A stretch of DNA of 63,829 bases, filler included, from Platydemus manokwari (Eukaryota): assembly GCA_037951405.1 (NCBI GenBank). It is 6 parts of 6 records of this genome, joined end to end, with 100 filler letters (N's around TTAATTAATTAA, not from the genome) between each part and the next. Parts side by side here need not be neighbours in the genome. Positions count along the whole stretch, not along the records: positions 11,492 to 23,155 come from JBBMOY010537774.1; 5 more parts are not named here. One strand, given 5' to 3'. A program made the translations under genes and the position numbers. The notes under the pieces were generated by a model. That model ran no database searches, was not told the origin of the DNA, and worked only from the letters and a program-made list of their open reading frames with translations. Below are positions 11,492 to 23,155 of the stretch, piece by piece (within the stretch, counting starts at the first letter, position 1; each line of letters begins with the position of its first letter).

Positions 11492-12388
11492 TGTTCAGCG
11501 TTATAACAATTTGTGTTAATAAAATACCTGCATAAAAACATGAATAACTTTTGACTCAACCTGGTATAGTTAATCGATATATTATTTAGGTGCAAAAATA
11601 ATGATAATGATTATTGTTCAAATTGCCTTCCACCAAAACTGTTTTTTACAAAGCATATATCAGTGAACTAAAACAGCACAATACACACACACGCGCACAC
11701 ACACATTTCATTCAATTGGTATAAAAATTATTTGTCCTATCTATTATTCTTTATTCTTTTGATTTGTCTCGATAGTTTCAAATCCAACTCCAATATCACA
11801 TTTCAATATAATCCAAACTGATAAATCTTCCAATAGAACCGAACGAAAAATATCTAATAAAAATCTCATTTGATAACCACCATGCTGATGACAATTGAAT
11901 ATGTACAATTTTCAACTCAATTTTCAAACACAAATCTTCTTTTCAAATGATTTGAAAGCCAACGAGATGCCATTGGTAAAAATACGAAATCTAAGAGTCC
12001 AATTCAGCAACAACCACCATATCAAGTCTTATAAGACCACCACTAACACTGGTATTTCGATGAAATAAATTTCTGATGTATAAATATACCCTTCTGAATA
12101 TATTTTTATCTGATTTGACGACAAAGAACTTGTCTATATCACAATATGATCTCCATCCACCAATTTATGGTACACATGTCAATGTCACGACTAAACTTGA
12201 AAATCCTTAAATATTGAAATGTAGAGATGATAAATTAATGTCTGTGAATTAGAATCTATCAAAAATAATCCTTTTCCTGACAACCAAATACCTTAATGGT
12301 TTAATAATTGTGTAGAACCAATCAGATTACATTTTAACGATTACGTCATACACAAGATCACAGGTCATCATCGATCTATTAATCTTAC

Positions 12389-12734
12389 CCCATGGAATGC
12401 TTTAACAATGCTAGATTAGCCGAAACATCATTGTCCATGTTGTCCTCGTTTCTTGCTATCTCTATTTTGTATACGAATTGCAAACACATTCCATTACTTT
12501 CCCCATTATTAGTATTCAACCAAGAACTCCATAATCGAGCAGAATGTTTTTTAATGTTAGGTATTTTCAGCCCGACAGGTCTCATACATGCAGCATCACC
12601 GATTTTAGGTCCATAATTCATTGATTCCCAAACAGCCGTTTGATCTCGTGGATCAGTATTCCATTGACAGAATCTATCTCCATAATTGAATTGACAGTCG
12701 ATCACAGATCGAGTAACATGATCATTTTTTTCTA
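12389..12734 (-). CDS. Variable exon V13 (class B MAM-like part-domain, VEKNDH...LALLKHSMG)
   Basis: Acceptor ttttatAG, donor GG|GTAAGA, 346 nt (1 mod 3), open frame. Confidence 0.88.
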
Positions 12735-15700
12735 CTATAAAAGAAGTTATTCTTATAAACTGTGAGTATTGTGTTAAATAGAACACGGCAACGTCACGGA
12801 ACTATCATCTTTTGAATTCAATTTCATTTTTATTTAAATTCTATATTTGATAAACAAAATCTAATGAATCAGATTGTAAATCATAATTGATAATATTGAA
12901 AGAAAATATAATTTCATAATCATGACGTCATCGTATATTGTTACAATTCGAAAAATTATCTTTTATTACGTCATATAATATTGCCACAGAATTTTTGACA
13001 TAATTCTTCCTTAATCACTTATCAAGATCAATATTAATGATATAATTTATTATCAGGTTCTATTATAATCATTTATTCTTCATCAACTATTGTTGTTTCC
13101 ATACACCTCCGATGAAAACATTGCCCCATCATGGTATAACTTGAATTTTTAAAACTCTAACTTGGAGACGTTATTTTCCATGATATAAAACTATAATTAT
13201 AAATAATAATTTCACTATCTTCATTCATCAAACAGACCCTAATCTTACCCCATTGTATGTTTCAATAATGCTAAATTAGCCAAAACATCATTGTTCCCAT
13301 TATCTTCATTTTTCTCCATTTCTATTTTGTACACGAATTGCAAACACAAACCATTATTGTTTAAATTTTTAGTGTACAACCAAGAACTCCACAACCTGGC
13401 TGAATGCTTTTTAATATTGGGAAAATTTGATGCCACCGGTCTCATACATGCAGCATCACCGATAATCGATCCATAATTCATTGATTCCCAAACAGCTGTC
13501 TGATCTCTTGGATCATCTTTCCAACGACAAAATTGATCTCCATAATTGAATTGACAGTCTAATATAAATTTGGCATCTTGCCCTCGTTGTACCGCTAAAA
13601 GAATTTATTTTGTTTATGAATTTCACAACTATTCAGTTAAAGAGAACATGGCATCGAAAAGGACAACTTGATTTGTTTTTAATTCGAATTTTGGTTTTAT
13701 GTGAAATAAATCATTGATATTGCATCATCGGCATTAATTCATACGTTCAATAAATCGCAGAATAATGCATGTTGTTAAGAATTAATAATAAAAAACTTAA
13801 TAAACATATTTTCTCTCGATATGTCACATCAAATCCTGTGATATTTGAAAGAAAGATTTTAAATTTCTTCTGACTATTTTCTAAAACAAATTCAGAAGCA
13901 AATTTCAGCAATAATTCTTGATCGATATCTTCGATAGTTAGGTCGAAATCAAAAATACCTTAATATAGCTCAAATAATTTCTAGAATCTGTCAACAAGAA
14001 TCAAACAAGCCCATTTCGTATGAAATAGATGAACGTTGTGATGTTTTGAATATCTACCGAATTACAGAGGATAATCGAGAATATTCGATATACATCAATC
14101 AACACTCGAATCGTAGATGTTATTAACAAAGGTATCGACTTAATCATTTCTCTGAGAATATGTCAAATCCAATGGAAATTCTTAAAACTACAACTATTGC
14201 GGATCTTTTTCTTAGATTGATTATAATTAGTCTTGAACCTTATTTTATTTATGATCAAAAATAGCTTGATCAATAAACCTTACCCCATTGTATGTTTCAT
14301 CAATGCTAAATTAGCCAAAACATAATTGTTCTCATTATCTTCATTTTTCTCCATTTCTATTTTGTACACGAATTGCAAACACAATCCCGTATTATTCATA
14401 TTTTTAGTGTACAACCAAGAACTCCACAATCTAGCTGAATGCTTTCTAATATTGGGAAAACTTGATGACACCGGTCTCATACATGCAGCATCACCGATAA
14501 TCGGTCCATAATTCATTGATTCCCAAACAGCTGTCTGATCTCTTGGATCATCATTCCATTTACAAAATTGATCTCCATAATTGAATTGACAGTTCAATAC
14601 AGAATGAGCTTTTTGCCTGTTTTGTATCGCTAAAAGGATTTATTTATATTAAATTACTGGCAATTCCATGGACAGAGAACATGACATCGTGTTGGAACAA
14701 ATATCGCTATACTTAAATGATTTTTTTAATATTCAGTATATCGTGCACCATAAAAATCAAACTATAGTCTGTCATCCTTTTTAAAGACTGAAAGTACTTC
14801 AAACTTGCTTGCCCTTCATTTCCTCACCATACTCACTGTCAAATTGTCAGTAAATAAATAAATCTACAATTCCCATTATCATATTTCTGATAAATTCACA
14901 TTTTTCTCTATCCATATGTTTTGACCAACTATCTTCATAAATAATATTAGAACATAAACTTATCCACTCACCCATCGGAATGTTTCAAAAGCGACAGTAC
15001 TGCTTGGTTTTTATTTTCCTGTCTATCATCACCACCATTATTGTAATCAATATCGATTCTGTATGACAATTTCAAACAAATGTCTTTCGATTTTTCGTTT
15101 TCCAAATTCAACCAAGAACTCCACAAACGGGCAGAATGTTTGTTTACAATCGATATTTTAGACATTATCGGTCTCATACAAGCAGCATCGCCAATAATCG
15201 GTCCGAAATTCCTCGATTCCCAAACGGCAGTTTTATCTCTGGGATCATCATTCCAACGGCAAAAATTGTCCTCATTATCAAATTTACAATTAAGTTTCCT
15301 CTCAATTTTCCCAGCTGCAATTAAAGAATGAGGCTACAACATTTTCCAATAAAAAGTATGCACTGAACAAGATCGATTGCAAAGCAACTTGAATATTGAG
15401 TCAATGAAATGACTTTTACAATATTTTTATTCACAAAAATTTGATCTCCAACTCACCCATCCGAATGTTTGAGAAGAGACAAAGTTACATTTTTCAGAAA
15501 TCCAAAATCGTTCTCTATATAATAACTAAATCGTAAGCATTTTCCAATATCCGTTTCTGCAGTCAACCATTGACTCCATAGTCGACCACTGTACTTCGTT
15601 TGTCTTCGATAACTGATAGGCTTCATACACGCTGATTCACCAATAATTCCGCCGTAGTTTTTTGATTCCCATAATTTCGTTCTATCTCGTGGATCGAGAT

Positions 15701-18700
15701 ACCAATTACAAAACGATTTGGGTTTGAACTCACAATTTAAAACACTTTGGAAATTCTCATTTGTATTGGTGTACTCTACAACCAATCAAATTTGATTTGT
15801 AATTTATTGGTTATTTATTTACTGCAGAAATCAAAGCTCGTTTTCATTTGTTGTTTTGGTTTTTTAAAAAAATATGAGTTTTATTATTTAATTTAATTAT
15901 TCTTACCCCATTTCTCGCCTCATTAAAGTAAGTTTACTCAGATTTGATGCTGGCATGTTATCTATTTTATAACTGAAAGACAGGCATCCGAGAGAAATTT
16001 TTTTTGAAATTACAGGACCCCACAACCGTGCTGTCAAACTCTTCGTAGTTAGAGGATCAAATACCAGACCATCATTTGTTTCTTCGCTTGCTTCCATGCA
16101 CATTGCCTTATTTCTTACGGAACCGGGAATATTAAAAACTTTCCAGTTAATCATCCAATTATTATTGTCATTGCTCCAATAACAGAGATTATTTCTTTCA
16201 AAGTCACATGAAATCTTAGAATTGAATTTAGAGAACTGATTGCTCCCTAAATTACATTACTCAATGACCATTATTTTTTATAAAACATCGTTGATATGGC
16301 TAGTTACTTGGCAACAAATGTTTGTTAACAAGAATTTATTTTTTAATACAAATTTAAATCACCTTAATAACCATTCTTATTCAATTGAACATTTAATAAA
16401 ATCTTCTTTTATTTTTATTTGTGTAAATAAATTGACACAAAAAATAATATTTGTGTTATAAAAACTAAATTTCTATTGGTTGGAAAATTAGACCAATAGA
16501 AACACACCTACCCCATTTCTCTTCTCATCAATGTCAGTTTATTATCATTGCTATTAAACAATTTGTATTTAAAAGTAACACAACGCAATTCTTGATCGGC
16601 TGTCATCGATGGGCTCCAAAGTCGTATTGTCAATATTTCGTTTTTCAATCGAGCAGCTTGACTCATTTTCGGGGAACTTAAACACGTCGCTCGATTTATT
16701 CCGTATTTATTGTCAATTCTATGAATTTTCCAATTCGTCATCCAATTGTTGGCATCATTCATCCAATTACATAAATTATTAGACTCAAAATTACAATCCA
16801 AATCACTGGAAGCTGAAATTAGAAAATTCCTTATTTTAAAAAGGAGCCTAACATTGAGAACAGAGCTCTATTGAATGTATAAAGTCGGTTAAAGACATTA
16901 CCATTTGTTAAAGTTCTAACCCACAAAATTTTCAATGAATCTCAAAAACAACTGGTTATAAAATGTTCATGTTTCTCTTATTACTAACCCCATTTCTCTT
17001 CTCATCAAAGTTAATTTCATTGGTAGATCTCCATCGATTCTGTACTGAAATGAGAAACATCCCAGTACAACTTTCTTCAACACTTCCGGTCCATACAATC
17101 TGGCGGTCAACGAGTCATCACTAATATCTTCAGGAAATTTCAGACATGCTCCACCATTTTCTTGGTTATCATTTGTAAATCCAATCGAATTAAGTGATGT
17201 TTGTTTCCAATTCAATTTCCAATTATTCGGATCATTGTTCCATTTACAAAAACCATTATTGAAAGAACAATCCAAATCCGATACCGCTAAAATCATAGAT
17301 TATCTTAATAAATAGAATCTCAATCGTCATTAAAATACTGAAGAACAAAGCTCGATCACGGTTACGGTTGTCCGTTAGACCAGTTTAATTTATTAAACAC
17401 GCTTTCACACGAAATATCGATATTCCTCAAAGAGCCTTTATTAGCTATTTTATTTAAACAGCCCATACTTGACAAGGCTGGTTTGTTCGGTATTTCGATG
17501 AGCTTGTTGTAATAATTTCATCGCTTTGGAGAGAGCAGCTTGCAACAATTATATGGGAAAGATTTCCGAAATTACATTTCATTTGATAAGCACAGCAAAA
17601 CAAACTCATATATAAATTGTTTCAATTGTTTCTCCAGCGTTGGAGACAATAAATAATTTTCAATATTTTAATGTAATTTACCAACAATTTTCATTTACTA
17701 ACCCCATTTCACGTCTCATCAATGTGAGACGTGTAAAATTATCCTTTTCCATTCTATATTGGAACATTATACAACCCAATTTGACATTTTTCAATATTTC
17801 CGGCCCCCATAATCGAGCAGTTAATAGTTGATAATTAATATTTTCCGTTGATTTCAAACATGCTCCTCCGTTTTCCTGATTGTCATGGTTCATAAATCCA
17901 ATCGAATCAAGAGACGTTTGTTTCCAATTCAATTTCCAATTGTTCTGATCGTTACTCCAATTACAAAACCCGTTCTCGAAAGAACAATCTATGTCCGAGT
18001 TCGCTAAAACGTGCCAAAATGTCACAGTAATAATTTAACTTAAAATTGTCTCAAATGTGCTGAGAACAAGCTCATACTGATTAGATTTCCCCAATAAAAT
18101 TTGTCAATTAAACATGGTTTGAGTATTTCGATTTTACTAACCCCATTTCTCGTCTCATCATCGTCAACTTCATATTTTCATCATTTTCCATTTTGTAAGC
18201 GAAAGAAACACAACCCAATTTGACTCCACTATAGATTACCGGACCCCAGAGTCGACCGGTCAATGCTTTTTCATTGGTCAATTTGTCCATGTTGACATTT
18301 CCAGTTAACTTCAAGCAAGCTTCTCGACGTATCAGGACCCAATTCAACAACCAATTATTGAAATCATTTGCCCATCTACAGAAACCATTATCGAAGTTAC
18401 AATCCAATTCCGTCGTCACTGAAGACAGAAAGACCCAAGATATAAAAGAATTTTTATAAATCGATCATGATCTGAGAACAAAACTAATTGTGGATCACAT
18501 TTGTTTGTCATTTTTATTAACATAATCATCATCTTCTTTTCGATTAATGAATCTTTCTAATAGGGTAACATGGCCTAATAATCCATATTCCAAGAAAAAC
18601 TATTCAAAAAAGATCTATATTCTTCAGTGCATTCTGATTGAAAACAAAATGCGTAAATCGATATCGATGAACAATTTGTTATGAGATTCAACAAAAATTT

Positions 18701-21614
18701 GTATGGCAAAATAATTAACATTTTAATGAAATTAAAACTCCAGAAAATTCTCAGAAGAATTCCTAATAAATAACCAGAGATATCAAAGCAAATTATGTCA
18801 AAATTTTCCTTCTATTATAATACTGCGAAAAAACTGTTTGAAAATTTGATGATAAAATAATCGATTTTAGTATTTCTATTTCACTAACCCCATTTCTCGT
18901 CTCATCATCGTGAGCTTCATATCTTCGACATTTACCATTTTATACACAAATGACACACAACCCAATTTGATTCCACTAAAAATTACCGGACCCCAAAGTC
19001 GAGCTGTTAAAGCTTTTTCATTGGTCAATTTAAACATATTGGGATTGCCCCATAATTTCAAACAAGCTTCTCGATTCACTCGTACCCAATTCAACATCCA
19101 ATTATTGGGATCATTTGACCATCTACAGAAATCATTATCGAAGTTACAATCCAATTCCGATAGCACTGAAGGTAAAAAAAAAAGACCAAAGGTATAAAAT
19201 AGAATTCATTAATCGATCATGATCTGAGAACAAAACTACTTATTAATTTGTCAGTATCTTCAATTTCGTATTTCAATTCCGTTCTTGTTAACTGGAATTA
19301 AGAGATTTTATAATTGATAAGAATCGGAGAACAATGGAAAACGTCACAATTCCTCAATATTTTATACACTGTCAAAGATGTACACCAAGAAACAATACTG
19401 ATCGGAAGAAAGTAAATTTCAATGCTAATATAAAAGCCACTGAGAAATTTGCTTAAAGATTCCAATGATAGATCAAAGTAAATCTTAATTCCATTTTTAT
19501 GCAAATTTAATAACAGATCATAATAATCCATAATCATATTCAATTACATTTCTTCATTTCAAATTGACCAATCGTATTTGCCATAAATAATTGATCGATT
19601 CAAACAATGATAATTTACTGAATCATAGATTTCAATCAATATTGCTATATCATTCTAATTATAACAATCACCACCAATTTCATTCTTAATTAGTCGACTA
19701 AGGCACGTTACAAAATAATAAAACATTTGCTTATCGACTAACCCAATCTCTCGACGCATCAATGTCAGTTTATGATCATCGCTATTGAACAATCGATAAT
19801 TAAACGAAATACAGCTCAAATTGGACTTTTTCGACATCACTTGACTCCAAAGTCTAGCAATCAACTTTTGATCCGGTTCTTCATTGTCCGATCCATCGGT
19901 TCTCATGCACACGGCCTTATGATCGATTTGCGGTTGATCTAAAAATCCCAACGTTTCCAAAGCCACGATTTCCCAATTCAATTTCCAATTATTTGGATCG
20001 TTGGCATATTTGCAAAGCCCATTTTCAAAATTGCAATCCAAATGTGAGGAGGCTGAAAATTTTTAATTTGAATGATTTTTGTGTGTGTCTCTGTCAGTGT
20101 TATAAAAGGAAAATAATTCATCAGCTGAAAAATTATGAATTTTCTGAGAACAAGACTGAATGGAAGGTCTTGTTTTGAAATTTATCCAGGAAAAACAGCA
20201 AAAATCTTGGACGAATTGTAAAGAATTGTTTCGTCATGTGTTCGAAGAAAGTGCTCGGTTCGTGTGAAGAGATGAAGAAATACGATTGAGAAATCCAATG
20301 ATCTTTCAGCATAATAATAATCACATTTATTTTAATGACGAATAAGAAATCTTTTATTTTTTTTTAATAATAAATCGGTTCAGTGAGAGATACACGAATT
20401 CTGCAATTCCTAGCAGACGATCGTTTCCAAGGATTCTAATTATCATATATCGTTTGCTTTTCACCTGAATTAAAAAAAACCAAAATGACATGAAAATGAA
20501 CATCAAATCGATATCAATAAAGGCGGATCCATGTTTTCCTTCTAGACAGTGTAATCATAGATAAATGGATATAACAACATAATAAATCAATTCCTGGATA
20601 AAATATTGCCAAGCAACTCTTCTAATAATGCCTTCAAGGACGTACAAATTGAACACAAAATATAAACAGATGCCATTATATTTACACAAATTTCGATAGA
20701 AACACCATTCTTATCCTTACAACAAGGGTCAAATAGAAACACCATTACCAAAAATAGACAGCCAATCAGAGACAATTACATCGATGACAACAGTGCATTA
20801 CGCCGCCACATGCCAATTGATTTAAACAAATCGAAAAAATTAATTCAATGCTATGAATTCCATTGATTATCGATGAAATCGATATTTTCCATGTATAAAA
20901 AATCAATAAATATTTCACTAACCTCATTTCGCGTCGCAGCAAAGTGATTTTGGTGTTTCCAGATTTTATGTAATTAAAACTGATACATTTAAGTGAGGTC
21001 TTTTGATTAGACTTCCTAACGACAGGCGACAACAGTCGAACAGCATTCAAAGTTTCACTGCCACCAAAATTTTCATTTTCAACATTATCAAGACTTATGC
21101 AAATTCCATTGGTTTTAAATTCGGTGGATTTTTCACGATCCAGATAATTGAGATTGGTCACTTTCCAATTCGTAATCCAATTGTTCCCATCGTTAATCCA
21201 TTGACAGAGATTGTATTCGAACTGACAGTCGATATTCCAGGAATTATATTTTCCTATTTCATGTCTATATTACAGCAAATCTATTCGATTATGTTCAAGT
21301 TATTAAAAGTTCTTTATAGTGGCACATGCTATTCTATTACGTAATAATATCATATTTTTCCAAATACGCATAATGAGTCATCTACCAAGCACTTCTACAG
21401 TTTCCCTTAAACAAATTTAATCTAGAATTTTATTATTTTAAAATAGTTATTTTTTTCCCTGTATTTCTAGAGTAACCAAACGTAAAATTTAGTAATAGAT
21501 TTTATAGTTCCAAGCAACGAGCCTTGTTCTCAGTGCATTTACAAAAAATAAAGAATAATAATTACCTGCCGCGTAACCCATAATACACAAAAACAAAATC
21601 GCTTTCATAGTCAT
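12389..21614 (-). CDS. MAM-like domain gene, 5' part: signal-peptide exon plus 13 mutually exclusive variable exons (constant 3' exons not resolved)
   Basis: Leader exon has a phase-1 donor. Thirteen paralogous exons have AG/GT boundaries, all phase 1 to 2, with the motif C-x-F-x(3-5)-C-x-W...RL(W)xx...C-x-x-F-x-Y typical of the N-terminal part of MAM domains. Docking/selector complementarity is present. Confidence 0.85.
12780..12805 (-). promoter_or_regulatory. Selector sequence for V13
   Basis: + strand AGAACACGGCAACGTCACGGAACTAT versus docking sense AGAACAAGGC-TCGTTGCTTGGAACTAT, about 46 nt upstream of the acceptor. Confidence 0.72.
13249..13594 (-). CDS. Variable exon V12 (class B, AVQRGQD...LALLKHTMG)
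   Basis: Acceptor tcttttAG, donor GG|GTAAGA, 346 nt, open frame. Confidence 0.88.
13642..13656 (-). promoter_or_regulatory. Selector sequence for V12
   Basis: + strand GAGAACATGGCATCG versus docking GAGAACAAGGC-TCG. Confidence 0.7.
14284..14629 (-). CDS. Variable exon V11 (class B, AIQNRQK...LALMKHTMG)
   Basis: Acceptor ccttttAG, donor GG|GTAAGG, 346 nt, open frame. Confidence 0.88.
14668..14698 (-). promoter_or_regulatory. Selector sequence for V11
   Basis: + strand ATGGACAGAGAACATGACATCGTGTTGGAAC versus docking ATGCACTGAGAACAAGGC-TCGTTGCTTGGAAC. Confidence 0.75.
14972..15314 (-). CDS. Variable exon V10 (class B, AGKIERKLNCKF...LSLLKHSDG)
   Basis: Acceptor aattgcAG, donor GG|GTGAGT, 343 nt, open frame. 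Confidence 0.88.
15358..15380 (-). promoter_or_regulatory. Selector sequence for V10
   Basis: + strand ATGCACTGAACAAGATCGATTGC versus docking ATGCACTGAGAACAAGGCTCGTTGC. Confidence 0.75.
15457..15775 (-). CDS. Variable exon V9 (class B, EYTNTNE...LSLLKHSDG)
   Basis: Acceptor ggttgtAG, donor GG|GTGAGT, 319 nt, open frame. Confidence 0.86.
15821..15842 (-). promoter_or_regulatory. Selector sequence for V9
   Basis: + strand ACTGCAGAAATCAAAGCTCGTT versus docking ACTG-AGAA--CAAGGCTCGTT. Confidence 0.68.
15907..16246 (-). CDS. Variable exon V8 (class A, GSNQFSKFNSKISCDFE...LTLMRREMG)
   Basis: Phase-1 acceptor taatttAG, donor GG|GTAAGA, 340 nt, open frame. Confidence 0.84.
16298..16315 (-). promoter_or_regulatory. 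Selector sequence for V8 (pairs with the distal half of the docking site)
   Basis: + strand GGCTAGTTACTTGGCAAC versus docking GGCTCGTTGCTTGG-AAC, about 52 nt upstream of the acceptor. Confidence 0.62.
16512..16812 (-). CDS. Variable exon V7 (class A, ASSDLDCNFE...LTLMRREMG)
   Basis: Acceptor aatttcAG, donor GG|GTAGGT, 301 nt, open frame. Confidence 0.88.
16852..16868 (-). promoter_or_regulatory. Selector sequence for V7
   Basis: + strand CATTGAGAACAGAGCTC versus docking CACTGAGAACAAGGCTC. Confidence 0.75.
16989..17286 (-). CDS. Variable exon V6 (class A, AVSDLDCSF...LTLMRREMG)
   Basis: Acceptor gattttAG, donor GG|GTTAGT, 298 nt, open frame. Confidence 0.88.
17337..17354 (-). promoter_or_regulatory. 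Selector sequence for V6
   Basis: + strand ACTGAAGAACAAAGCTCG versus docking ACTG-AGAACAAGGCTCG. Confidence 0.78.
17703..18003 (-). CDS. Variable exon V5 (class A, ANSDIDCSF...LTLMRREMG)
   Basis: Acceptor cgttttAG, donor GG|GTTAGT, 301 nt, open frame. Confidence 0.88.
18053..18073 (-). promoter_or_regulatory. Selector sequence for V5
   Basis: + strand AAATGTGCTGAGAACAAGCTC versus docking AAATGCACTGAGAACAAGGCTC. Confidence 0.82.
18142..18418 (-). CDS. Variable exon V4 (class A, VTTELDCNF...LTMMRREMG)
   Basis: Acceptor gtcttcAG, donor GG|GTTAGT, 277 nt, open frame. Confidence 0.88.
18472..18485 (-). promoter_or_regulatory. Selector sequence for V4
   Basis: + strand CTGAGAACAAAACT versus docking CTGAGAACAAGGCT: 14 bp including 2 G-U pairs. 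Confidence 0.8.
18889..19165 (-). CDS. Variable exon V3 (class A, VLSELDCNF...LTMMRREMG)
   Basis: Acceptor accttcAG, donor GG|GTTAGT, 277 nt, open frame. Confidence 0.88.
19224..19237 (-). promoter_or_regulatory. Selector sequence for V3
   Basis: + strand CTGAGAACAAAACT versus docking CTGAGAACAAGGCT: 14 bp including 2 G-U pairs. Confidence 0.8.
19743..20052 (-). CDS. Variable exon V2 (class A, ASSHLDCNFE...LTLMRREIG)
   Basis: Acceptor attttcAG, donor GG|GTTAGT, 310 nt, open frame. Confidence 0.88.
20144..20157 (-). promoter_or_regulatory. Selector sequence for V2
   Basis: + strand CTGAGAACAAGACT versus docking CTGAGAACAAGGCT: 14 bp including 1 G-U pair, about 92 nt upstream of the acceptor. 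Confidence 0.8.
20923..21253 (-). CDS. Variable exon V1 (class A, divergent, GKYNSWNIDCQFE...ITLLRREMR)
   Basis: Phase-1 acceptor gaaatAG (weak pyrimidine tract), donor AG|GTTAGT, 331 nt, open frame. Confidence 0.8.
21501..21540 (-). promoter_or_regulatory. Intronic docking site (transcript sense AAAUGCACUGAGAACAAGGCUCGUUGCUUGGAACUAUAAA)
   Basis: Single GC-richer island about 25 nt downstream of the leader-exon donor, reverse-complementary to the motif upstream of V2-V13. Confidence 0.85.
21566..21614 (-). CDS. Leader exon encoding a signal peptide MTMKAILFLCIMGYAA
   Basis: ATG, basic residue, hydrophobic core and small residues at the end. Donor CAG|GTAAT is phase 1, matching all 13 variable-exon acceptors. 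Confidence 0.85.
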
Positions 21615-23155
21615 CTAAATAAAGAAAAACTTGTAAATTCAGAATTTCTTAAATATATTTAATAAAAATAAAAAAGTTCAATACAATTCCATAAATTTGG
21701 TTTTGACGCTTAAAAAATTATTCTCCAAACTTATTCATTAAATTAATTATAAAATTAATCATATTTATTAGATAAATATATTAAAAAATCCAAATGAGAA
21801 GGTTGACAGGTATTGAAACATTATTTAAAAATTTTTAAATTATTTTTACGATTTATTTTTCCAATTAAATGGTAAGATTTTAAAACTTACCATAAACAAT
21901 GAATAGTATTTCAAATAACACAGAATGAGTAATAAAAGTTAAATTTTCCACAAATAAGATTGAAAAATTAATATATATAAACAAATCAATTTGAAACAAA
22001 TTTTTTATTAGGTTTAAATCTGATGTACAGATTTTTCATCACAGTAATCTTTTTTTTGCTTATTTTATCGTTTAAAAACTATAATTTAATTTTATACATC
22101 AAGTTCGATCGTAAGTTGCATTTACCAAAATAATTCACATTTTTTAAATTCAAATTCTTATGACATTCATTCATCTTTTCTTTTAACCAAATAATTATCA
22201 GATAAAATTTTTTATGGAAATTTATAAGCAAAAATACGGGTGTTTAATTCTCAATAGTTAAAATTTTCATATTTAATCCCTTCATTTAATAATTTAAGCA
22301 ATTTTATAAATGAATCCCGTTGCTTTTGAGAATATTTTAATTAAAAATTTTATTCCAGCAAATTGTGCTGCATCGTCATTTTACTTGGAGCAATTTTCTA
22401 CCTGGAGTCAATAGATTTTGACGTATATGAGTTATGCTAAAGTAAAAAATTATTCAAAATATTTCCATAAAAATTTGCTGTTGAAGTTATTTAAATATAT
22501 AACTAATTTTATTTTCATACTAATTTCACTTAGCCATTTATTTTATTATTTTTGATAAAAACAAGAATTTTTTTATATTTCATCATTAACCAAAAACAAA
22601 TACCAATCAATTTCTTCAGTAGAATACGCGATTATTAATTTTGCTTAAACGATTTAAATGATAAAAGTGGCTTACTTTAAGAAGAAAAATAATAATTTTT
22701 ATGGTTATCTTAATTTTTTGTTATATACTTAAAATATTATATATTGAGAATTTTATCGAGAAAATTATAGAGATTTAAGTTTAATAAATTAGTAGTGATA
22801 TAAACCAATATTTGACACTACACTCTTGATTTATTTTTATATTTAATTATCATTAACTTTCTTTATAATATTCACTAGATCACTTTGTTCGTTTCTAGAT
22901 TCGCTCATTTGTTCATATTATAAAAAATAATTACAATTAAATATTAAAATAATTTGATAATAAAATGCCAGATACTAGTTTATACCACTGCTACGATCAT
23001 AAAATAAAAATTTATACTATAACATGAAATTCTAAAAAAATTATAATAAGAAATTTATAGAGAAAAATTCATAAAATTTCATAAAAAAAATTTATAATCA
23101 TAAAATAAAAATATCACGTAATTTGAACAACTATATTAAAAATATAAAAATAGGT

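Follow-up and report, generated by a model that had tools for sequence, protein, structure and literature searches.

How does a gene use thirteen versions of the same exon: one at a time, in series or as separate genes? This question is raised by a locus of the flatworm Platydemus manokwari (GenBank assembly GCA_037951405.1). The window, by which we mean the whole stretch of DNA under study (63,829 nucleotides, filler included), holds the locus within the piece that we analysed, positions 11492-23155 (JBBMOY010537774.1). There, a leader exon is followed by thirteen tandem variable exons, numbered V1-V13 in transcript order. We conclude that the array is probably a mutually exclusive exon cluster controlled by RNA pairing and that it forms the 5′ part of the gene of a flatworm membrane receptor with a single MAM domain. 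A preliminary description of this DNA had proposed a mutually exclusive cluster on a MAM scaffold. Its proposal is supported by the splice phases and exon lengths, by the shared domain part, by docking and selector sequences and by Schistosoma gene models.

Thirteen variable exons encode the same part of a MAM domain

The coding signal of the piece lies exclusively on the minus strand. Its G+C content is ~31% across 11492-23155 and drops to ~20% upstream of 21600. A hidden Markov model (HMM) built from the units gave exactly 13 matches, all on the minus strand between 21253 and 12389 (E 4e-28 to 4e-37), and none other in the piece; the thirteen tandem paralogous exons with intact splice sites and open frames that had been described before were thus recovered in full. 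Each unit has a polypyrimidine-AG acceptor, a GG/GT donor and a length of 1 mod 3 (277-346 nt). The gaps between units measure 83-870 nt, and the HMM found no further exon in them. Because the piece stops 897 nt past V13, the intron downstream of V13 is longer than 897 nt and the number of thirteen exons is a lower bound.

Four cysteines (C6, C13, C48 and C77 in V5 numbering) are invariant across all 13 exons, as had been noted, and an RLW motif and the terminal glycine are also conserved among them. The end motif divides the exons into two classes, RREMG-like (class 1, V1-V8) and KHxxG-like (class 2, V9-V13). The earlier statement that the exons end in RREMG or KHxxG is correct for the classes but not for every member, V1 ending in RREM(R/S) and V2 in RREIG.

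Eight exons were tested against the Pfam MAM profile (PF00629), and all matched profile positions 1 to ~95 of 158. This agrees with the claim that they encode the same N-terminal part of the domain. Five of the eight scored above the cut-off of 26.4 bits (28-41 bits), and the KHS-class exons lay just below it (20-21.5 bits). The complete MAM domain, a jelly roll of ~160 aa, is not encoded in the piece, which provides positions 1-95 only. On the minus strand in 11492-12388, neither a full-length MAM HMM nor an HMM of the second exon cluster described below detected a C-terminal part of the domain. An open reading frame (ORF) at 11796-11933 resembled a MAM C terminus by eye; Pfam gave no match, and the candidate was rejected. 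No Ig or FN3 domains were detected either, since MAM was the only Pfam domain of both the exons and the full-length orthologues.

The variable exons read as alternatives

All 13 exons have entry phase 1 and exit phase 2. In 13 of 13, an AG in phase 1 lies 3′ of the last in-frame stop and 5′ of the first Cys codon. Six of them offer no second AG in this interval, whatever the phase, and phase 1 is the one phase that all 13 have in common, so the phase assignment is independent of the choice of acceptor. The single leader exon upstream, which provides ATG and signal peptide, has exit phase 1 and thus matches the entry phase of every variable exon. Neither a start ATG nor a signal peptide is present in any of the units. 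Both statements of the preliminary description on this point, one leader and no signal peptide in the units, were therefore borne out. Tandem paralogous exons of like phase and similar length that encode the same protein segment are one mark of a mutually exclusive cluster, and the array has all of these properties.

Nevertheless, the units might not be alternatives. They could be serial half-MAM repeats of one protein, or separate genes that use promoters of their own or spliced-leader trans-splicing, which is generally known to be used by flatworms. The public flatworm gene models P0004, P0007, P0009, P0010, P0013, P0024 and P0030 concatenate units and would favour this explanation; along with P0059, P0068 and P0140 they chain several units or end after one, and they all look like systematic mis-annotations of an exclusive array. 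The reading frames argue against serial or separate use. Because the exons share one phase and a length of 3n+1, double inclusion leads to an early stop: with the leader joined to any two units, a stop codon follows within 3-27 codons of the second unit in every pair. Translation in phase 0, as after an AUG supplied by a spliced leader, ends within 0-46 codons in every unit. Moreover, half a jelly roll (MAM 1-95 in each unit) cannot fold alone, and the short gaps between units hold no other exon. From the frames, the stops and the missing start codons and signal peptides we therefore conclude that the units read as alternatives; serial repeats or independent genes are extremely unlikely.

The leader is homologous to the leaders of Schistosoma and Heterobilharzia gene models. 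A polypyrimidine tract and an AG stand immediately 5′ of its ATG (21615-21640, minus strand; ...ttctttatttag followed directly by ATG). Because this polypyrimidine-AG abuts the ATG, the leader may itself be an internal or a trans-spliced exon. In Heterobilharzia americana, the homologous leader exon (contig L005, 28020-28090) lacks an ATG, and that of the public model is taken from 18 kb upstream. Schistosomes are known to have a spliced leader that ends in AUG, and such a leader could be an alternative source of the ATG in H. americana. The region 5′ of the P. manokwari leader (21615-23155) is very AT-rich (19-23% G+C) and contains low-complexity tandem repeats.

A putative docking site in the leader intron is complementary to twelve putative selectors

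A 39-nt sequence in the leader intron, not noted in the preliminary description, has the properties of a docking site (Table 1). Upstream of V2-V13 (12 of 13 exons) we found a putative selector complementary to it, 17-79 nt 5′ of the acceptor, with free energies (dG) of -21.8 to -31.2 kcal/mol (RNAduplex). Every selector resembles, in degenerate form, the reverse complement of almost the entire docking site, the centre of which (GAGAACAAGGCTCG) is engaged by 10-12 of the 12 selectors. Because the selectors share this one docking core, the predicted pairings are mutually exclusive.

The complementarity clearly exceeds that of shuffled controls. Summed over the 13 introns, dG was -343, compared with -218 (sd 12) for 100 shuffled docking sites, a difference of ~10 standard deviations (sd). 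When the docking site was scanned along the whole pre-mRNA, 11 of 13 peaks at or below -24 kcal/mol were located directly 5′ of a V acceptor. The core motif CTTGTTCTCAG (≤2 mismatches) occurred 12 times against 2.35 expected occurrences, and none of 100 shuffles reached 12.

V1 is atypical in several respects. Besides its unusual end, RREM(R/S), its RLW motif is replaced by RLL, its branch is the longest of the exon tree and no selector was found for it (dG only -15). V1 could be a default exon, could be regulated differently or could be in the process of being lost. The donors of the two classes also differ. Class-1 exons have a non-consensus GG/GTTAGT donor (V1-V6, e.g. 18888-18883), which is kept in the related contigs L002, L004 and L007 described below, and class-2 exons have GTAAG or GTGAGT. 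With GTTAGT, class 1 keeps a weak 5′ splice site, which is what one expects of exons under regulation.

Complementarity of this kind may arise without a function. Ivanov and Pervouchine (PMC6071210) show that tandem duplication yields it automatically. The cluster could then be a genuinely exclusive one in which proteins, splice-site strength or nonsense-mediated decay determine the choice, the complementarity being the relic of a duplicated ancestral hairpin arm. The missing selector of V1 would fit this explanation, as would the H. americana orthologue, in which no docking site and selector pair was detected (see below), and the conserved weak donor of class 1 suggests regulation at the protein level. 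Evidence on the other side comes from the introns of close relatives.

Selectors and exons are conserved in close relatives

Relatives were found by profile search and look-ups as short contigs, which come from three further public samples (L002, L004 and L008; L007; L003 and L009). All of these contigs bear the same tandem V exons. In 13 of the 15 exons scored there, a selector fits the docking site of the window at -27 to -35 kcal/mol, 7-55 nt 5′ of the acceptor, suggesting that the docking sequence is conserved in the relatives. The other two exons, whose acceptors are doubtful, had values of -22.4 and -14.2. V6 and its L007 orthologue share 90% amino-acid identity, with a proportion of non-synonymous differences (pN) of 0.065 and of synonymous differences (pS) of 0.81, which is saturated. 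Their upstream introns are unalignable except for one 23-nt block (22/23 identical), and this block is the selector.

Across orthologue pairs, pN was 0.065-0.2 at saturated pS. Paralogue and orthologue pairs gave ratios of non-synonymous to synonymous substitution rates (dN/dS) of 0.12-0.57 where dS could be estimated. The low dN/dS and the lone conserved intron block indicate that purifying selection acts on the coding sequence of the exons and that the selector is selected at the RNA level. A relic of duplication would not be expected to persist as the only conserved intron block at saturated synonymous divergence, nor would 13 of 15 exons be expected to keep it close to the acceptor, at a constant distance, with its fit to the docking site preserved. 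We therefore consider it unlikely that the complementarity is such a relic.

In contig L007, the V5 and V6 orthologues are separated by an extra variable exon (419-722). At this place the window has a 416-nt intron (17287-17702), in which the HMM detected no relic. Exons are therefore gained or lost between close species. The end of the same contig (1179-1197) resembles a remnant of a Nextera adapter (CTGTCTCTTATACACATCT), i.e. untrimmed adapter.

It is also conceivable that few of the 13 exons are used and that the others are silent relics of recent duplication which have not yet decayed. Such turnover between close relatives would be in line with this, as would the divergent V1 with its atypical end and no selector, and the young duplicates V11 and V12 (dN/dS 0.57). 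However, frames, splice sites and the four cysteines are intact in 13 of 13 exons, a selector is kept in 12 of 13, old pairs have dN/dS values well below 1 and pN in orthologues remains low at saturated pS. We regard silent relics as quite improbable.

A tree of 56 units first separates the KHS/RHS class from the RRxMG class (99/96 support). Exons of the window, of trematodes and of L006 occur in both classes, indicating that the two classes are older than the split of these lineages. Later exon expansions in this tree are lineage-specific.

Trematode orthologues have a second variable cluster and a transmembrane helix

Homologous exons are present in Schistosoma, Heterobilharzia, Paragonimus and Opisthorchis. 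The H. americana locus (L005) comprises a phase-1 leader exon and ~17 units that start 12.6 kb further on. Their order is that of the window, RRxxG-type first and KHS-type last. By protein search we found that S. mansoni A0A5K4F7P9 and four S. mattheei models (P0155-P0158, one chromosome) share the leader and a constant C-terminal part. The exon of the first cluster (cluster 1, to which the V exons belong) differs between the S. mattheei models, being of the KHSTG type in P0155 and P0156 and of the MRREG type in P0157 and P0158. Each schistosome model has one cluster-1 exon and then a second variable segment of 45-60 residues that starts with SC. This segment differs between P0157 and P0158 despite their shared first exon.

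In Paragonimus heterotremus (L011), at least 10 exons arranged in tandem, 16-31 kb downstream of cluster 1, correspond to the second segment. The three L011 exons of this cluster 2 that were inspected have entry phase 2, exit phase 0 and a length of 3n+1. Cluster-2 arrays are located at 29481-44274 in L011, at 14941-26398 in L001 and at ~63066 in L005, and they encode the middle of the MAM domain (SC...C.N..LW...W...V.L). Since the orthologues have a second variable cluster, which the preliminary description does not mention, their diversity is combinatorial. The tails of the Paragonimus models P0010 and P0013 are cluster-2 exons and cannot be aligned between the two species. Phylogenetic footprinting of two Paragonimus loci gave no signal, the introns being ~84% identical throughout.

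Full-length schistosome orthologues match Pfam MAM over positions 1-158 of 158 (29-48 bits), so the domain begun by cluster 1 is completed by the constant part. Beyond the MAM domain follow a transmembrane helix with an RRRHH stop-transfer motif and a ~250-residue tail rich in N, Q and S. The helix in the schistosome orthologues supports the suggestion, made in the preliminary description, of a cell-surface product. An AlphaFold model of the schistosome ectodomain had low confidence, with a predicted local distance difference test score (pLDDT) of 57 and a predicted template modelling score (pTM) of 0.54. The top Foldseek matches of this low-confidence model were MAM domains (template modelling (TM) scores 0.37-0.47), namely LAST-MAM, PTPRK, meprin beta and RPTP mu. 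Among solved structures, those closest in sequence are neuropilin-1, enteropeptidase and meprin, and the ESM Atlas returned generic MAM clusters only.

Some of the public records are unusual. The S. margrebowiei model P0161 and the S. bovis model P0164 are seemingly fused to a neighbouring UBA-domain gene. The four S. mattheei isoform records (CAH8472108 to CAH8472466) extend across ~360 consecutive accession numbers, a spread that may reflect very many deposited isoforms of the gene.

A model for the choice of one exon

The gene product would be a single-pass membrane protein with one MAM domain as its sole recognisable ectodomain. According to our model, the leader is joined to one, and only one, of the 13 or more variable exons, which would supply MAM positions 1 to ~95. 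The docking site would pair with one selector at a time, as in the exon-6 cluster of Dscam1, and this pairing would place the leader donor ~40-100 nt from the chosen acceptor and loop out the intervening exons. Exons left unpaired would be skipped, and a transcript with two variable exons would suffer a frameshift and end early. By analogy with the schistosomes, the chosen exon would be joined to one cluster-2 exon and then to constant exons for the end of the MAM domain, the transmembrane helix and the low-complexity tail, all beyond the piece. The outcome would be a combinatorial set of surface receptors whose differences are confined to the MAM domain. We infer that each mRNA of P. manokwari contains one variable exon, that pairing activates an exon rather than blocking it and that the choice is stochastic.

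Several observations weigh against exclusive splicing controlled by RNA pairing. The second cluster and the constant exons lie outside the piece, and V1 has no selector, its intron giving a background value of -15.0. Two strong pairings of the docking site are off target, one inside V5 (17946-17995; -26.1) and one in the V12-V13 intron (13096-13145; -24.1). These complementarities may be due to chance or may be decoys or elements of the balancer type. The likeness of the selectors is partly due to their duplication together with the exons, and the docking site itself was not recovered from the relatives (a search with a 41-aa leader ORF gave no candidate). In H. americana L005, k-mer complement, motif and duplex energy scans found no docking site and selector pair but G-rich background only (z ~-3), so the RNA mechanism may not be general. 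Furthermore, the schistosome isoforms are known here as third-party gene models alone, and the only public run holding the locus consists of fragmentary DNA contigs with no splice joints (15700-21650). Having considered these points, we still regard an exclusive cluster controlled by RNA pairing as probable.

A more far-reaching interpretation appears possible to us, if doubtful. The gene would be an independently evolved flatworm counterpart of Dscam1, encoding a single-MAM receptor with two exclusive-exon clusters, the first of which is chosen, perhaps stochastically, by docking and selector pairing. Isoform-specific and possibly homophilic binding would serve as an identity or self/non-self code, and this system would be old in Platyhelminthes.

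The coordinates of all features are listed in Table 1. 3′ of V13, the piece further contains an (AC)n microsatellite (11683-11705).

Table 1. Leader exon, docking site, variable exons and putative selectors of the P. manokwari locus, in transcript order
Feature	Positions	Strand	Length (nt)	dG with docking site (kcal/mol)	Remarks
Leader exon	21566-21614	minus	49		ATG and signal peptide MTMKAILFLCIMGYAA; begins at ATG 21614, ends GCA G/GTAAT at 21566 (donor CAG/GTAAT)
Docking site	21506-21544	minus	39		in leader intron, 22-60 nt 3′ of leader donor; core GAGAACAAGGCTCG
V1	20923-21253	minus	331		RREM class; open frame; no selector found
V2 selector	20132-20166	minus		-27.1	79 nt 5′ of acceptor
V2	19743-20052	minus	310		RREIG end; orthologue in L002
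V3 selector	19212-19243	minus		-24.4	
V3	18889-19165	minus	277		
V4 selector	18460-18495	minus		-29.7	
V4	18142-18418	minus	277		
V5 selector	18051-18086	minus		-31.2	
V5	17703-18003	minus	301		orthologue in L007
V6 selector	17336-17362	minus		-28.3	22/23 nt kept in L007 orthologue
V6	16989-17286	minus	298		orthologue in L007
V7 selector	16845-16878	minus		-26.8	
V7	16512-16812	minus	301		
V8 selector	16277-16316	minus		-26.1	pairs chiefly with 3′ half of docking site
V8	15907-16246	minus	340		last of RREMG class
V9 selector	15796-15860	minus		-24.0	
V9	15457-15775	minus	319		first of KHSxG class
V10 selector	15357-15390	minus		-30.6	
V10	14972-15314	minus	343		
V11 selector	14659-14699	minus		-30.2	
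V11	14284-14629	minus	346		
V12 selector	13641-13671	minus		-21.8	weakest
V12	13249-13594	minus	346		
V13 selector	12752-12804	minus		-27.6	
V13	12389-12734	minus	346		donor opens an intron running off the piece

Comparison with known systems

To our knowledge, arthropod Dscam1 is essentially the only known case of a surface recognition domain diversified by large arrays of exclusive exons, and the docking and selector logic is regarded as an arthropod invention. The P. manokwari locus would place the same logic on an unrelated fold (MAM) and in another superphylum of animals; trematodes and L006 share both of its exon classes. Should transcripts bear out our interpretation, the locus would be a clear case of convergent receptor hypervariability, would offer a small and tractable protein with one ectodomain for studying how splice diversity encodes recognition and would point to a new family of surface molecules in schistosomes and other parasitic flatworms. 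On the practical side, many public flatworm models of the locus are wrong concatenations of alternative exons.

The closest likeness is with the exon-6 cluster of Dscam1. Both are large tandem arrays in which each exon encodes part of one extracellular domain. In both, one docking site is located in the intron after the preceding constitutive exon and selectors lie 5′ of the variants (here of 12 of 13), all competing for one core. This architecture has been described for Dscam1 exon 6 and related clusters (PMC6071210). As in Dscam1, diversity is combinatorial, the orthologues of the flatworm gene having a second variable cluster. However, the flatworm scaffold is a MAM jelly roll rather than an Ig half-domain, and the protein is small with one ectodomain. 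The system belongs to Platyhelminthes, its 3n+1 exons cause a frameshift on double inclusion and it offers tens of variants, not thousands. It is known from sequence, and no homophilic, neuronal or immune role is known for it. The preliminary label of a Dscam-like gene on a non-Ig scaffold is thus apt for the docking and selector layout of the exon-6 type; with Ig and FN3 absent, though, the gene is an analogue and not a member of the Dscam family.

Competing intronic pairings at tandemly duplicated exons are also described (PMC6071210, PMC4691838, PMC7797038) for insect 14-3-3 zeta, Mhc, srp and MRP1 and for vertebrate ATE1 and dynamin 1. These clusters have 2-8 exons and mostly belong to intracellular or housekeeping proteins; none of them encodes a recognition domain of a surface receptor in 13 or more variants.

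With RPTP mu and kappa, meprins and neuropilins, the flatworm exons share the Pfam MAM family. According to Zondag et al. (1995), as cited in PMC9258826, homophilic binding of RPTP mu and kappa involves an N-terminal MAM domain. In these multidomain proteins the MAM domain is invariant, whereas in the flatworm protein it is both the sole ectodomain and the diversified part. Unlike them, the flatworm protein has no phosphatase, protease or CUB/FV-VIII module.

Clustered protocadherins, the sDscam genes of chelicerates and UGT1A resemble the flatworm locus in that variable 5′ exons, arranged in tandem, are joined to constant exons and so yield a repertoire of surface receptors. Their variable exons, however, have a promoter, an ATG and a signal peptide of their own, whereas the internal exons of the flatworm have no ATG and all rely on the same leader. 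The preliminary description knew of no account of such a system, and a full-text literature search likewise found no MAM exon array and no docking and selector splicing in flatworms. The kind of mechanism is already known; its MAM scaffold, its occurrence in Platyhelminthes and the combination of two clusters appear to be new.

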